Position numbers and translations under genes: made by a program
In this document: in pieces, positions 31,690 through 46,762 of the stretch
Position numbering within the stretch: the first letter of the stretch is position 1
Layout of the letters: each line of letters starts with the position of its first letter
The notes under the pieces: generated by a model
What the model saw: only the letters and a program-made list of their open reading frames with translations
Database searches by the model: none
What the model was told of the DNA's origin: nothing
NCBI GenBank assembly: GCA_964187785.1
Contig: OZ076414.1
Coordinates: forward strand, 6,324,001-6,388,000
Origin: Amphiscolops sp. MND2022
Lineage: Eukaryota
Reading direction: 5' to 3'
Length of the DNA stretch: 64,000 bases

Positions 31690-32355
31690 TCATTCTTGAT
31701 ATCGTTCTTCATAATTTACAAACCTCAGAGTCCAATATAATCTTCGATCTTCTTCAATTAAAGCTTCTCGAATATCTCTTTCGATAGATTTTACAGCTGT
31801 ATTAATAATATGTTCATCTTTTCGTAATTCATCTGACAAATCAAATATCAATATTCCTTGCATTTTAACCACTTCAATATTCAATTCTTTATCATTTTGT
31901 AATCTTTCTGAAGCATTAAATAATGTTAAGGGGTCATTTTTTATTGAAGCTAAAACAATTTCTTTATCATCTTTTAATTCATCAGAAGCATATTGTAAAG
32001 CATATTCATTTATTTTAACTAAGTCCATCATTAAATTTCTATTGAAAATAACAAAATCACCAGGTTGTGTTGTTTCTAAGTATAAAATTTTATCATAAAA
32101 TTCAACAATATTTCCATTTAATGTGAAAGTAAAATTACTTCTTTCATAATCTTCTTCGATATTACCTTCAAAACTATTTAAGCACTTATCATTTTTATCA
32201 CAAGGTTTTACAAACTCAATAAGAGTTCTATTAATAGGGGAGGTAGCATTATTTTTCATCCATCCTTGTAAACATTTTTCTTCATACATATACCCATCAC
32301 TACACATAACTGGATGTCTAATTCCGATTTGATTGATTGGACAAAGTGGATTCTT
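31690..32355 (-). pseudogene. U-box plus DUF4116-like repeat protein (putative viral E3 ligase); start codon apparently ATG to AAG
   Basis: The in-frame N-terminus reads NPLCPINQIGIRHPVMCSDGYMYEEKCLQGWMKNNATSPINR, which fits the U-box pattern. The C-terminus has ALQYASDELKDDKEIVL-type repeats. Confidence 0.78.
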
Positions 32356-32390
32356 TTATTAGGTTTATTTTATTTGAATTGTTATTTGAA

Positions 32391-35300
32391 TTACACCACA
32401 TAATAAGGTAACATCTGATTCAATTCATTAGGAGGTTGTCTCTTGAGTTCATTTAAATTAGCTTCAAATTCTTTATATTGTTTCGTTTTGCTTTCACAAT
32501 CTTCACAAATATAATCATCACTACATTTGTTACAATATCTATCTCGAGTCGGAATTACAACTCCATCTGAAAATGGTTTCTTCCAAGAAAGCGGGAACTT
32601 ACTACTTACCGATTTACCTTCTTTCATCTCAAAATACTTCTTTGAGTCCAGTAATCGATTGACATCACTAAAACCTTTGAAAGTTTTATGTTCTTCAATA
32701 ACTCCAAATTCATTTATAGTTAAACAATATTTTATTTTTGGTGCTAAAAACAATCCAAAGAATATACCACCATCGCCATAATGGTTCTTAGCTTGAAGTA
32801 AATTACTTCCAACATATCCAACTGAATTCAAAATATTCCAATGTTTTTTCTCGATATACAAACTATCAGTATCTTGGTAAAACACGTTATTTGATTTAAA
32901 CCCATCAATAACCTCAACAAAATTATTCATAATTCTTTTACTGTTGCTCAGAATAAAAGCACCTAATTGTGATGGCATTGTGTTTTTGTTATCAATTTCC
33001 CCATCAACACCTTCATCAAGACTAAGTTGAACAATGTAATGACCATTCGGCAATCTCCAATAATCTTTAACCCTTTCATCATATTCTGTTTTCATCCAAT
33101 TTTCCGTCTTACAACAAAACTCATCTTCAATATCTCTACGAATAGTTTGACCGTAAATCGAATTCATGATTAACTTAACCATTTCTTGTAGAATGTCTTG
33201 ACCTTCAGATTTATGTTTTAACCTCAAATCAAATAGGTTTTTAATGAAGTCTCTAAACGGTGATACGTTTTAATTCTCTCTATAAATAACACCTTCATAA
33301 ACTTCTATAACTTTTCCACCGATTCTTACGATTTCTTGGATATCTACACTTGTTAGAACATCAATAATATATCCATTTCTCAATCTATTGATTTCTACTT
33401 TATTGACTTCTTCTTTAACTGGAATGTGTTGTAAAACAATATCGTTTGGGTTATAATATTTAATCTTCAGAATAGCTGACTTCGTAAATGTTTTCATGTT
33501 AAATTGATTAACAATTTCATTATTCATTTCGGGTGTGAAAGCAAATCCAGTCTCAATTTTAGGGTATGTAGAAGATTCATCATACATAGCACTCGGATAT
33601 AGACTAGTAGCATCAAAAGCCATTAACAGATCATCAAATTCTTTCTTCCACAAAAGAATTAGTTTCTTTGATATCTCCAACTCAGAAAACTTTTCATTTA
33701 TGTATTTATTTTTGTCTTGTTGTTTGACTTGTCTTTAATCTGAATAGTTTGATAAATATTCTGCTTCATATTTGTTTTTGAACTCTTTAATGTATTTGAC
33801 ATAAGCTTCAACTATTTCGTATTTGTTACCGTTAACATTTAAATCATTGAAATTGTAGTGAAAATTTTGTCAGAAATTTGTGATTCGTATAATTGATTGA
33901 ATGCTCCAACTTTACCACCTTTGATTGCTTGTCTTACAAAATGTCTCATATATTTATCAGTATAAGAGTAAATAGGTTCGTCATCTACACATCGAGATGA
34001 TATAAAGTGTTTCCATCCTAAAGAAGGTAGAGATAAACAATCTTTCATTCCAAATCCAGTGATAGAAGACATATTCATTGAATATCTTGCGTATATGAAT
34101 GCTAAAGACAAAATATCCATTCTCAAATAAGGCTCCCACTCACCCCTCTTTGATTCCCAAGTGTCTTCATATATCTCATTATGATTCATTTCTTGTTTCA
34201 TAAGTGAAGACTGTAGTTTATACGTCTCACCTAGCTTTCGGAGTGAAGACTTCATGTGATTCATACTACAAGTGAAAGTTAGATATTGCGGTTGACCTTT
34301 TGAGTTTGCTTTAACATTTACCATTCCATTGAAGATTTTCAAGCTTATAATTCCTTTACCATTTTTAATCATATTCATAATTTTACATCCTTCAGGTAAA
34401 TTGTTTAAGTTAATCCAAGTGTCAAATCCAGAACCATTGTGTGCAAGTAATTTCAAGTCATATTCAGCTATAAATTCTCTCCCATTTCTGTTTAATTTCT
34501 TCGGTTCACCTTTAAGAGCTCTTAATCTTTCAAACATTTCTGTTATACAATTCTCACCTTCGAAAAGTTTTACATCACTCACACATTTATCAATCTCATC
34601 TTGAGTTAAATCACGATTCCATTTGGAAGCTAACTTGGAAACTGGATAAAATCCAATAGCGTAGGGAACTGCTCTGTCTTTGTTATATGTTTCTATATCA
34701 TATACACATACATTGTTTAGTTGACTTTCTATTTTTTTGGTTTGAAATTATACTCTATATGTTTATTTACGTTAGTACTATTTACAGAATTGTTAACTTA
34801 TTCAAAATTGGCTTCGAGTTCTTCAACTGCTTTCTTAAGTGAGTCACCCAAATACAACAAAAGTGATTGTTGTGTAAATATAAACATTTTCTTCTTTCTT
34901 TAACACTTCTGGGCATAACTTCTTTTCCATTGAAATATCCAAGTTCAATTCCATACTTCTTAACAAAAGGTTGAATTCTTGCTAAAGTCACAACATTTTT
35001 TCTTCTATCACCTTCACTAATGAAGTCTAAATATTGTTGAGTATAATCGTTTCCGGTTAGATAGTTAATACATTTAACAAAACAATTATTTCCAGTTGGA
35101 ATATAGCAGTTGGTTCCGAAGTACTCTTCTATGTCGAACAGATGGTTGCTTCCTTTACCATAATTACTTCGCTTTATGGGTTTGAAATCAGGTTGAGGAA
35201 GTTGAAAAGCATAACCCTCAAAAACTACATCTTCTCCATCATATTTTTCATCACTTTTTCCAATGTAAGATTCGAAGTCATTAGTATTCTTGAAACGCAT

Positions 35301-35510
35301 GTTAGTTTTCTTTTTGTTTCCGTTTATTGTCATTTCACCAACGAGTTCAAATCCACGGTTTCCATTATTTAATTTATCTCGTATTTCAAAAACATTTAAT
35401 CCTTTAATGTTTGATCTATCGGCTTCAGCTAATTCAAAGAATCTACCGACATCAATTTCATCATCATCATGAGATTGCTTCTTTGAGTTTTGTTCCTTAG
35501 CTTGTCTCAT
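32391..35510 (-). pseudogene. polB: Protein-primed family B DNA polymerase (pPolB) with N-terminal extension, frameshifted
   Basis: Exo motifs YDIET (~34700), AHNGSGFD and YLRMDI; polymerase motifs AFDATSLYPSAM, KLIMNSIYG and YQDTDSLY. Confidence 0.96.
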
Positions 35511-35696
35511 TTATTAGGAAACAGTTACTTGAAATGATTTTCACTTTTTTAACAAAAAGAGTTTAACAATTTTTCATCCCTAAACAGATACACTTCATAA
35601 CCTTTTGAATCTGGATAATCGAAATTAAAGTTTGTGCTATTAACAAGTTCAACAAAACTATCACAAAGAGGCGTAGTAAAAATTACATATCCACCA

Positions 35697-45714: not shown

Positions 45715-45815
45715 TTATAAATCATAAATTGATTCTTAAAAATCATAAATTTGATTTTTGGATATAATCATAATTCCACACCTCATGACAAAATTGTTCC
45801 TTTATAAATCAAAAA

Positions 45816-46571
45816 CTAAGCAAATGGATTGGTAGAAGGAAGGTATAGGGTATTTAAATTCTTCCGATATTTGCCATCGTTTTTCTTTTTGGTTAAATCA
45901 ATAGTTATAAAGTTATAATCATCATTCCACACATCATGACAAAATTGTTTAAACTCTTTTATTACCATATCTGTAGAAGATAGTTGTCTATGAATGCATT
46001 CTACATTAGCAAAATTATTAGTGGTAAAAAAAGTGGTGAATAATTGTTGAGTTTTCTCTTATCGTGTCTTTAGGAAGCTCGTAGAAGCCGTGTGATATGA
46101 CGAAAATTGAAAGATTGTTATGATGACCCCTCTTGAATAACATTTGAAGACGAGGGTCTTGTAATTGTTGTTTGTTCAAGTCATCAAGAATTATTACAGT
46201 ATGTATGTCTGATTCATATTCTTGAGGATCTTTCAATTCATCTATGTTGTCATAACTTTCACATTCTATATTCGATGTTTCAAAGTCTTCATCGTTGATA
46301 ATTTCTTCTATTGTAGTGTCTAGTTCATCAAGAGGAATTTGTTCTTTTAAAATATTTTGAATAACGTTCAGAGGTAAGAAACTGTTGAAGCATTTGATTA
46401 TAGTTTTATAAGTTGGTTGATGAATAGTTGGAGAAAATATTAAAAAATTTTATCGAATTCGTTTATTATGTTGAATAATATTTTAAACAGGAGAGTTGAT
46501 TTACCACTTGCTGTTTTACCTGAGATAATACATCGCACAGGTTTTTCAGGATAAAGGTTTTTTTCAATCAT
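45816..46571 (-). pseudogene. A32/FtsK-like genome packaging ATPase, frameshifted
   Basis: Walker A GKTASGKS (~46500-46523), Walker B IILDD, and RGHHNNLSIFVISH..Y..P..IREN. Confidence 0.93.
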
Positions 46572-46730
46572 TTATATTTTTAAAATTCTTCTCTTTGATT
46601 GAAAGAATAGATATCCTAAAACTAATATAACCATAGCTATAACTATTATAGCAATTGGAATGGTAAATACTAGAGATTGTTTGAATACATCCACCATGTT
46701 ATCTGTATTCGTACAATTTGTTACATTCAT
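46572..46730 (-). CDS. 52-aa single-pass membrane protein
   Basis: MNVTNCTNTDNMVDVFKQSLVFTIPIAIIVIAMVILVLGYLFFQSKRRILKI: two N-sequons, one TM segment, basic tail; its TAA abuts the ATPase ATG. Confidence 0.7.
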   Translation of the reverse strand: MNVTNCTNTDNMVDVFKQSLVFTIPIAIIVIAMVILVLGYLFFQSKRRILKI

Positions 46731-46762
46731 TTATTTACTTGTAAATAGACACCAATCTAAAC

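Follow-up and report, generated by a model that had tools for sequence, protein, structure and literature searches.

Almost every gene in one virus-like transposon appears to begin at the same six letters, TAAATG, and we asked whether this reflects chance, translation or a dedicated expression signal. The element lies in a window of 64,000 nucleotides (the whole stretch of DNA analyzed, from Amphiscolops sp. MND2022, contig OZ076414.1), and a sequence-only reading had listed 16 gene starts at TAAATG, with one exception at 40023 and a further site at 32355 said to fit after one substitution. That observation held and is stronger than first described, as all 16 positions carry TAAATG on the minus strand with the A of the ATG at the listed coordinate. 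We found a 17th at 35719 that had been missed. The exception at 40023 is real but keeps TAAAT displaced 6 nt upstream, and the site at 32355 does not carry the motif as the sequence stands and is counted as not fitting.

To define the element, we examined its termini and scanned its translated products against Pfam. It is a Polinton/Maverick at 30942-47446 with its genes on the minus strand, larger than the 32353-46733 given initially, and is bounded by terminal inverted repeats (TIRs) of about 680 bp that are 98-99% complementary (30942-31624 and 46763-47446) and by an identical 6-bp target-site duplication (TSD; 30936-30941 and 47447-47452). The element is AT-rich (30% GC) in a flank of about 42% GC. 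It carries a protein-primed DNA polymerase B (PF03175 matches on the pieces, with uninterrupted genes of 1036 and 1053 aa in the related elements L002 and L003), an rve integrase (PF00665, E = 2e-11), a double-jelly-roll major capsid protein (PF21738, E = 8e-14) and an A32-like packaging ATPase (PF04665, E = 3e-6 on one piece). An adenovirus-type cysteine protease, present in most group 1 members (10.64898/2026.06.19.733378), was not detected, with no protease family hit at E <= 0.5 among the window or L002 proteins, although very diverged homologues cannot be excluded. In agreement with the sequence-only reading, these scans also revealed no recognizable RNA polymerase, nor a recognized transcription factor. 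The genes are all co-oriented, as claimed, but this is true of this copy and not of the relatives L003 and L004.

This copy is decayed, and several of the listed starts head only short ORFs; the genes do not have introns, because their orthologues in L002 are uninterrupted. All of the genes described here are on the minus strand. Following the direction of transcription, the first gene inside the right TIR is a 52-aa ORF (46572-46730), which has a TAAATG start although no gene lies upstream of it. The A32-like ATPase gene (45816-46571) is broken by at least 1-2 frame changes, and the TAA of its TAAATG is the stop of the upstream ORF. A 286-aa-type gene (44857-45714, 1 in-frame stop), a 253-aa-type gene (44024-44781, 1 frame change and 2 stops) and a 51-aa ORF (43733-43888) all start at TAAATG; the second of these lies where the minor (penton) capsid protein is usually found but gave no family hit, so that any such identity rests on position alone. 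The major capsid gene (42438-43715, 425 aa) is intact and has a TAAATG start with an upstream ATT box (described below). TAAATG starts are also found at a 141-aa-type gene (41995-42417, 1 in-frame stop), a fibre-like repeat protein gene (40289-41885, 533 aa in L002) broken by several frame changes and an 80-aa-type gene (40029-40262, 1 in-frame stop). These are followed by the exceptional 69-aa ORF (39814-40023), in which TAAAT lies 6 nt upstream of the ATG in L002 as well.

Continuing toward the left end, an intact gene (39131-39751) encodes a 206-aa protein with a hydrophobic stretch apparent in the translation and a weak SLATT_1 match, and has a TAAATG start with the ATT box. A 52-aa ORF (38846-39004) starts at TAAATG, as does a 146-aa-type gene (38407-38845; 1 frame change, 3 stops) whose TAA is the stop of the upstream ORF. 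A 225-aa Zn-finger gene (37698-38375), for which an HNH-like assignment rests on reading the sequence only and has no Pfam support, has a TAAATG start with an additional box at -25. The rve integrase gene (36866-37720), with 1 in-frame stop against L002, has a TAAATG start lying inside the end of the upstream gene, and a 79-aa ORF (36515-36754) has a TAAATG start with a near-match to the -25 box. The Zn-ribbon protein gene (35953-36480, 175 aa) is intact but lacks the motif here and in L002 and L003, and always follows the small ORF upstream of it. A 93-aa-type gene (35700-35978, orthologue of L002 11286-11567) carries one break in this copy and is not counted among the ATG starts, although its orthologue starts at TAAATG. 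The ORF that had been missed (35549-35719, 56 aa) is identical in L002 and starts at TAAATG. The polymerase B gene (32391-35510) is broken, with 2-3 frame changes and 3-4 in-frame stops against intact relatives, and starts at TAAATG with the -25 box. The DUF4116 repeat protein gene (31690-32349) has no start motif as the sequence stands, but its orthologues in L003 start at TAAATG with the -25 box.

To determine whether the motif is enriched at gene starts, as had been proposed as a test, we compared it with other ATGs and ORFs in the window. Of the 20 gene starts that open with ATG, 17 have TAA in front, whereas this is the case for only 15 of the other 384 ATGs on that strand (3.9%; binomial p = 1e-21). 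Of ATG-ORFs of at least 50 aa on the coding strand of the element, 14 of 26 start at TAAATG, compared with 0 of 6 on the opposite strand and 1 of 110 in the flanks (Fisher p = 3e-11); no host genes were available in the window, so the comparison does not extend to the start-codon context of the host. The ORFs of the element that lack it are mostly inner pieces of broken genes. Window-wide, TAAATG is not in excess (77 seen against 69 expected), and internal copies on the coding strand occur about as often as base composition predicts. The excess is therefore the gene starts themselves.

We next examined related elements, which come from at least ten other datasets. Across 13 elements with 25-92% capsid identity, TAA precedes 74 of 95 ATG starts, including 7/7 in L020 (31% capsid identity), 2/2 in L019 (29%) and 2/2 in L021 (25%). 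Seven of the exceptions keep TAAAT 2-7 nt upstream of the ATG, and the motif therefore matters more than its touching the ATG. The preference is sequence-specific and not for any stop codon, as the ratio of TAA:TGA:TAG before ATG is 74:1:0, whereas real gene ends use 27:17:11 (p = 5e-22). The motif follows gene orientation in divergent genes (L003 and L020), and also sits inside the coding end of upstream genes, with overlaps down to -26 nt, so each gene has its own copy. Not all relatives behave in this way, however: some use the motif weakly (L022 1/4, L004 4/9) or use another motif (L006, and L024 with 0/18).

Alignment of the starts revealed a second box at fixed spacing, with T at -14 and at -13 in 50 of 59 starts each. 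TT is present there at 37 of 54 gene-start TAAATGs against 11 of 61 other TAAATGs (p = 5.5e-8). Columns further upstream carry little information, except for the -25 box in one class of genes, which sits at exactly -25 in 7 of 61 starts against a background of 0.0012 per position. A matrix trained on relatives alone, without the window or L002, places real gene starts at ranks 1-11 of about 128,000 positions in the whole window.

The interpretation that accompanied the original observation is only partly supported. A dedicated, sequence-specific expression signal resembling the pox-type late initiator is supported, termination-reinitiation on polycistronic RNA is not, and helper-virus dependence remains possible but without support. 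In our best reading, which we consider more likely than not, each gene carries its own compact, two-part core promoter laid directly over its start codon. One part would be an A/T-T-T box at about -15 to -12, and the other, about one helical turn downstream, a W-W-A-TAAAT initiator whose last two letters are the A and T of the ATG. Replication-type genes (polB, DUF4116, a Zn-finger gene and a small ORF) add the third box at -25, which suggests two timing classes. The analysis itself establishes the motif, its fixed position, its strand and gene specificity, its conservation across distant relatives and its power to predict gene starts, whereas we infer, from sequence alone and without RNA data, that it is a transcription start and what kind of leader results. 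Transcription would start inside or right next to TAAAT, and the messages would have almost no templated leader, or possibly an A-leader made by polymerase slippage as in poxviruses, which would explain why a T at -3, normally a poor context for a scanning ribosome, is tolerated. Near-leaderless messages are, however, poorly translated in animals. As to the polymerase, we lean to host RNA polymerase II with TBP, possibly helped by an element protein, over a helper giant virus. Ordinary Pol II usage is not obvious, because there is no signal at -33 to -26, where a TATA box would lie if the start were at TAAAT, and if the TATAAA at the ATG were itself the TATA box, the start site would fall inside the ORF.

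The proposed layout has counterparts among published late promoters, whereas we found no earlier description of such a signal for these elements. In poxvirus post-replicative (intermediate and late) promoters, a TAAAT(G/A) initiator lies at the transcription start, often overlapping the ATG, behind an A/T-rich core and a 5-7 bp spacer, and there are likewise two related classes (PMC5294985). Here, the upstream element is only a short A/T-T-T box about 8 nt before TAAAT instead of a T-rich core of about 20 bp, the element has no viral RNA polymerase or late factors, and the carrier is an integrating Polinton and not a giant virus; 5' poly(A) leaders would be by analogy only. The African swine fever virus (ASFV) late promoter of the p72 type has two essential parts, TATTT at -15 to -11 and an AT-rich (TATATA) initiator at -1 to +5 (PMC5294985), which are close in spacing and letters to the ATT(T) box and W-W-A-TAAAT seen here. 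This agreement is at the sequence level only, as ASFV positions are counted from a mapped transcription start and ours from the ATG. Virophages and Polinton-like viruses that share promoters with helper giant viruses (mavirus/CroV, Sputnik/mimivirus, Gezel-14T/PgV) are also small capsid-encoding elements without a polymerase that carry one short motif in front of most genes, but those motifs differ in sequence (for example AAAATTGA in Gezel-14T), and there the helper is known and its own promoters carry the motif, whereas here no helper is known and the host appears to be an animal. Stony-coral polintoviruses (PMC11131425) are the same kind of element, probably in the same kind of host, and relatives of this capsid occur in a Cyphastrea coral metagenome. 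The text of that paper does not contain the words "promoter" or "transcription start," and some of its elements carry a VLTF3 homologue, which Pfam did not find here.

How Polintons/Mavericks of animals, which have no RNA polymerase, express their genes is essentially unknown, and a conserved, predictive signal for each gene marks true gene starts, which helps annotation, as shown by the additional ORF, and exposes wrongly called starts. It also splits genes into two putative timing classes and provides a sequence marker that can be matched against giant-virus promoters in the same samples, making the question of an autonomous virus or a virophage-like parasite testable with existing sequence and RNA data. 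Its likeness to pox/ASFV late promoters bears on the proposed descent of giant viruses from Polinton-like ancestors. A more far-reaching possibility, which we regard as unlikely but not excluded, is that animal (coral-associated) Polintons of this clade are expressed through a pox/asfar-type late transcription system, either as hyperparasites of a still unseen giant virus of the holobiont or because the two-part promoter is an old trait shared by descent with pox- and asfar-like giant viruses, which would link the transcription signals of the two groups as well as their capsids.

Of the alternatives, virophage-like dependence survives best, although we consider it unlikely. In this view, the motif is the late promoter of a pox- or asfar-like giant virus infecting the same animal or an associated protist, and the element is transcribed by the polymerase of that helper in the cytoplasm. 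The resemblance to late promoters, a promoter for every gene, the absence of introns in intact relatives and of a polymerase gene, the AT-richness of the element and two promoter flavors suggestive of timing classes all speak for this, as does turnover of the motif among relatives (L006 and L024), which is reported for endogenous mavirus-like elements (PMC8547959). There are also precedents, as virophages and Polinton-like viruses share helper promoters (10.1101/2022.07.28.501842; PMC11502894), and Polinton-like viruses have been found in entomopoxvirus occlusion bodies (PMC11296320), a precedent for such elements parasitizing a poxvirus in an animal. The text of the latter paper contains none of the words promoter, TAAAT, start codon or transcription, and its capsids are reported as highly divergent, with no relation to this family found or tested. 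Against this view, no helper is known or was seen here, and the element is a TSD-flanked, multicopy, decaying germline-style insertion with an rve integrase. Polintovirus hallmark genes in the coral Stylophora pistillata are reported as expressed in ordinary control colonies (PMC11131425), which leans toward host machinery, and the same motif across 25-92% capsid identity and many datasets would need an equally widespread helper lineage.

We also wondered whether the motif might mainly be the poly(A) signal of the upstream gene, packed against the next start in a tight genome, or whether this might be a second role of the same letters. Among 74 sites, the hexamers at -5 to +1 are AATAAA (29), TATAAA (22), ATTAAA (7), AGTAAA (5) and CATAAA (3), all of which are used as poly(A)-signal variants in animals, and many intergenic gaps are too short to hold another signal. 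However, the motif is present where no gene lies upstream (46730 and the divergent pair in L020), a poly(A) signal needs no exact register with the ATG, TATAAA at 30% is far above its usual share and the ATT box at fixed spacing is unexplained, making this reading very unlikely.

A translation-level signal, either termination-reinitiation or an in-frame stop placed to block read-in from upstream, is about as improbable. The TAA is by definition in frame with the ATG, and true stop-start junctions do occur, in 2 of 17 starts here and in 4 of 34 in relatives (1/15, 1/13 and 2/6), confirming the earlier statement that only some are stop-start overlaps. The TAA is usually not the stop of the preceding gene, and the gaps to that gene range from -26 to +402 nt. 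The near absence of TGA and TAG, the motif at the first gene of the row and at divergent genes, the upstream ATT box and the displaced TAAAT in the exceptions are likewise not explained. Finally, chance or the base composition of an AT-rich element, for which only the lack of a window-wide excess of TAAATG speaks, is refuted by the position-specific tests, all of which go against it.

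To define the element that carries the start-codon motif, we first established its boundaries and gene content. It is a Polinton/Maverick on the minus strand with terminal inverted repeats (TIRs) at 30942-31624 and 46763-47446 that show 98-99% complementarity, and the same 6 bases flank both ends, at 30936-30941 and 47447-47452. The element therefore spans 30942-47446, which is larger than the 32353-46733 of the sequence-only reading. Each TIR tip, at 30951-31091 and 47296-47437, contains its own inverted sub-repeat of about 50 nt (90-98%), so that each element end could fold back on itself. 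A Pfam scan identified a protein-primed polymerase B (polB), an rve integrase, a double-jelly-roll capsid protein, an A32-like ATPase piece and a DUF4116 protein, whereas no RNA polymerase was found among the proteins scanned. The element has about 30% GC in flanks of about 42%, and the window as a whole matches a 97x metagenome contig (ENA ERZ25074608).

Because several genes are split in this copy, we asked whether introns could be the reason and compared them with relatives. A locus from the same sample, L002, carries a 92%-identical capsid, and there polB (1036 aa), the fibre-like gene (533 aa) and the integrase (286 aa) are uninterrupted. L003, a relative with 76% capsid identity, likewise has uninterrupted orthologues, so that introns were rejected and the split ORFs are attributed to decay of the window copy. 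Counted against L002, L003 and L020 (31% capsid identity), the capsid gene, the gene for the 206-aa putative membrane protein and the Zn-ribbon gene are intact. In contrast, polB has 2-3 frame changes and 3-4 stops, the fibre-like gene has several frame changes, the ATPase gene has at least 1-2 frame changes, the 253-aa-type gene has 1 frame change and 2 stops, and the 146-aa-type gene has 1 frame change and 3 stops, while the integrase gene and the 286-, 141- and 80-aa-type genes have 1 stop each and one small gene has 1 break. The intact 206-aa protein (39131-39751) has a hydrophobic stretch, seen in the translation only, and a weak SLATT_1 match (E = 4e-4), and it is 97% identical to its L002 orthologue; SLATT domains are listed among Polinton-like virus genes (10.64898/2026.06.19.733378). 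The fibre-like protein (40289-41885; L002 5212-6813) has repeated short '...K.YVD' units and a weak MAM-like C-terminal match, and at 792 aa in L003 its length varies among relatives. L002 also carries two paralogous Zn-finger genes (3918-4574 and 8894-9562), HNH-like by reading of the sequence only and each 35-39% identical to the single copy of the window (37698-38375), which lacks the copy that follows the capsid gene in L002.

The observation made in the sequence-only reading, that nearly every gene of the element begins at TAAATG, holds. All 16 of the TAAATG starts that it proposed were confirmed on the sequence, and a 17th that it had missed was found at 35719. With gene starts defined mechanically as the first ATG of an ORF, 14 of 26 ORFs of at least 50 aa on the coding strand start at TAAATG, compared with 0 of 6 on the other strand and 1 of 110 in the flanks (Fisher p = 3e-11), and those without it are mostly inner pieces of broken genes. 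With starts defined by orthology to L002, 17 of the 20 starts that open with ATG have TAA in front, against 15 of 384 other ATGs on that strand (p = 1e-21). TAAATG is not in excess in the window as a whole, so the excess is the gene starts.

To determine whether the motif is shared, we searched with the capsid, which found hundreds of relatives, and fetched loci with 92% down to 25% capsid identity to the window from at least ten datasets. The assemblies that hold these elements include ERZ25074608, ERZ25071359 and JGI 3300018414. TAA precedes the ATG at 17/21 listed genes in the window (one of which does not open with ATG, its first codon being altered in this copy), at 15/19 gene starts in L002 (92%), 15/21 in L003 (76%), 4/9 in L004 (43%), 1/4 in L022 (38%), 7/7 in L020 (31%), 2/2 in L019 (29%) and 2/2 in L021 (25%). 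In total, TAA precedes 74 of 95 called ATG starts, and most short contigs from coral-type metagenomes also fit. The count is conservative, as at least one apparent exception in L004 has an in-frame TAAATG two codons upstream of the called start. In L003 and L020, the motif follows genes on the opposite strand. Scans of IMG/VR with the capsid or its alignment returned nothing, and a scan with distant capsids returned a single contig, L024 (UViG_3300040794_000071, 17.6 kb). In L024 and in L006, both more distant relatives, a different start-proximal signal is used, namely TAAAA 0-3 nt before the ATG with an A-run/T-run box further upstream, and TAAATG is at 0 of 18 ORF starts in L024; the start-proximal motif therefore turns over within the wider group. 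One metagenome with a relative (Ga0126343) is from the coral Cyphastrea, and a Pao-type retrotransposon lies next to L004 (L004 17561-21197) on a contig of the same sample and coverage. From this indirect evidence, to which LTR-retrotransposon fragments in the window flanks add, we infer that the host is probably an animal, perhaps a coral.

We next examined what kind of signal the motif represents. It is not a stop codon as such, because the ratio TAA:TGA:TAG before ATG is 74:1:0, whereas real gene ends use 27:17:11 (p = 5e-22). Seven exceptions keep TAAAT displaced 2-7 nt upstream of the ATG. Column counts revealed a second box, with T at -14 and at -13 in 50 of 59 sites each, A or T at -15, and W-W-A at -6 to -4, other columns being near background; the TT pair accompanies 37 of 54 gene-start TAAATGs but only 11 of 61 others (p = 5.5e-8). 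A third box, ATTT[CG]AA, sits at exactly -25 before polB, the DUF4116 genes, a Zn-finger gene and a small ORF in the window, L002 and L003, but not before capsid-module genes. This amounts to 7 of 61 starts against a background of 0.0012 per position, in about four orthologue groups. The box was noted upstream of the starts at 35510, 36754 (a near-match) and 38375 in the window, 8894, 10506 and 11752 in L002, and 5710, 6568, 17216 and 18306 in L003. The -25 box suggests two promoter classes, which may be early and late. As a test of predictive power, a matrix for -18 to +4 trained only on relatives other than L002 ranked called gene starts at positions 1-11 of the whole 64-kb window on both strands.

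The Zn-ribbon gene lacks the start motif in the window, L002 and L003. It always follows a small TAAATG-headed ORF with an A-run between them (window 35953-36754; L002 10506-11311; L003 17216-17966), and the two may be expressed together. An intron joining them is not supported, as the three-way alignment shows only the A-run. The Zn-ribbon protein was also modelled to look for a transcription-factor fold, but the model had a mean pLDDT of 48 and was unusable.

A fixed two-part signal that is oriented with each gene, is present even inside the coding end of the upstream gene, is independent of the upstream stop and is kept over deep divergence is what a per-gene core promoter with an initiator looks like. 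At the sequence level, with positions counted from the ATG, the layout resembles published late promoters, which consist in poxviruses of a core, a 5-7 bp spacer and then TAAAT(G/A) at the start site, and in African swine fever virus (ASFV) of TATTT at -15 to -11 plus an AT-rich initiator at -1 to +5; both are described as 'bipartite' (PMC5294985). Whereas the motif, its position and its conservation are read directly from the sequences, we infer from sequence alone that it acts as a promoter, that transcription starts in TAAAT, and that leaders are near zero length or made by slippage. We consider the promoter/initiator reading more likely than not. The interpretation given in the sequence-only reading is thus supported in part, as regards a dedicated expression signal. 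Promoter motifs shared with helpers are known for virophages and Polinton-like viruses, as are the pox and ASFV late layouts, but literature searches for the motif together with Polinton, Maverick, virophage or adintovirus found no description of a TAAATG-type, start-codon-overlapping, two-part signal in Polintons/Mavericks.

Strict dependence on a helper giant virus is a separate question, and we regard it as possible but unlikely. In its favor are the likeness to pox and ASFV late promoters, the presence of one promoter per gene, the lack of introns and of a polymerase, the two suggested classes, the motif turnover seen in L006 and L024, and precedents in virophages, Polinton-like viruses and entomopoxvirus-associated elements. 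Against it, no helper is known, the element is a multicopy, decaying insertion flanked by a target-site duplication, coral polintovirus hallmark genes are reported as expressed in ordinary colonies (PMC11131425), and the motif is very widely spread. The absence of a box at -33 to -26, however, also makes textbook Pol II usage unclear. A poly(A) signal and a TATA box at -30 were likewise tested and set aside as the main cause. Termination-reinitiation, the alternative offered in the sequence-only reading, is not supported, because the TAA is the stop of the previous gene in only 1/15, 1/13 and 2/6 cases in relatives, with gaps from -26 to +402 nt, and the first gene after the TIR has the motif too. 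Any in-frame stop and base composition were also set aside as the main cause.

The LTR-retrotransposon fragments in the flanks lie at 669-1667 on the plus strand and 56159-56599 on the minus strand and comprise reverse transcriptase, RNase H and integrase. A tandem repeat with a unit of about 1995 bp, in at least 3-4 copies at 77-99% identity, occupies about 17900-24400 inside a 20-kb stretch (8-28 kb) with very strong G-over-C skew; Tandem Repeats Finder gave nothing in this left flank because of the period of about 2 kb, although a general repeat search did find the repeat. A near-perfect palindrome, with two 125-nt arms at 97% that are 1 nt apart, lies at 30078-30328, about 600 bp outside the left TIR.
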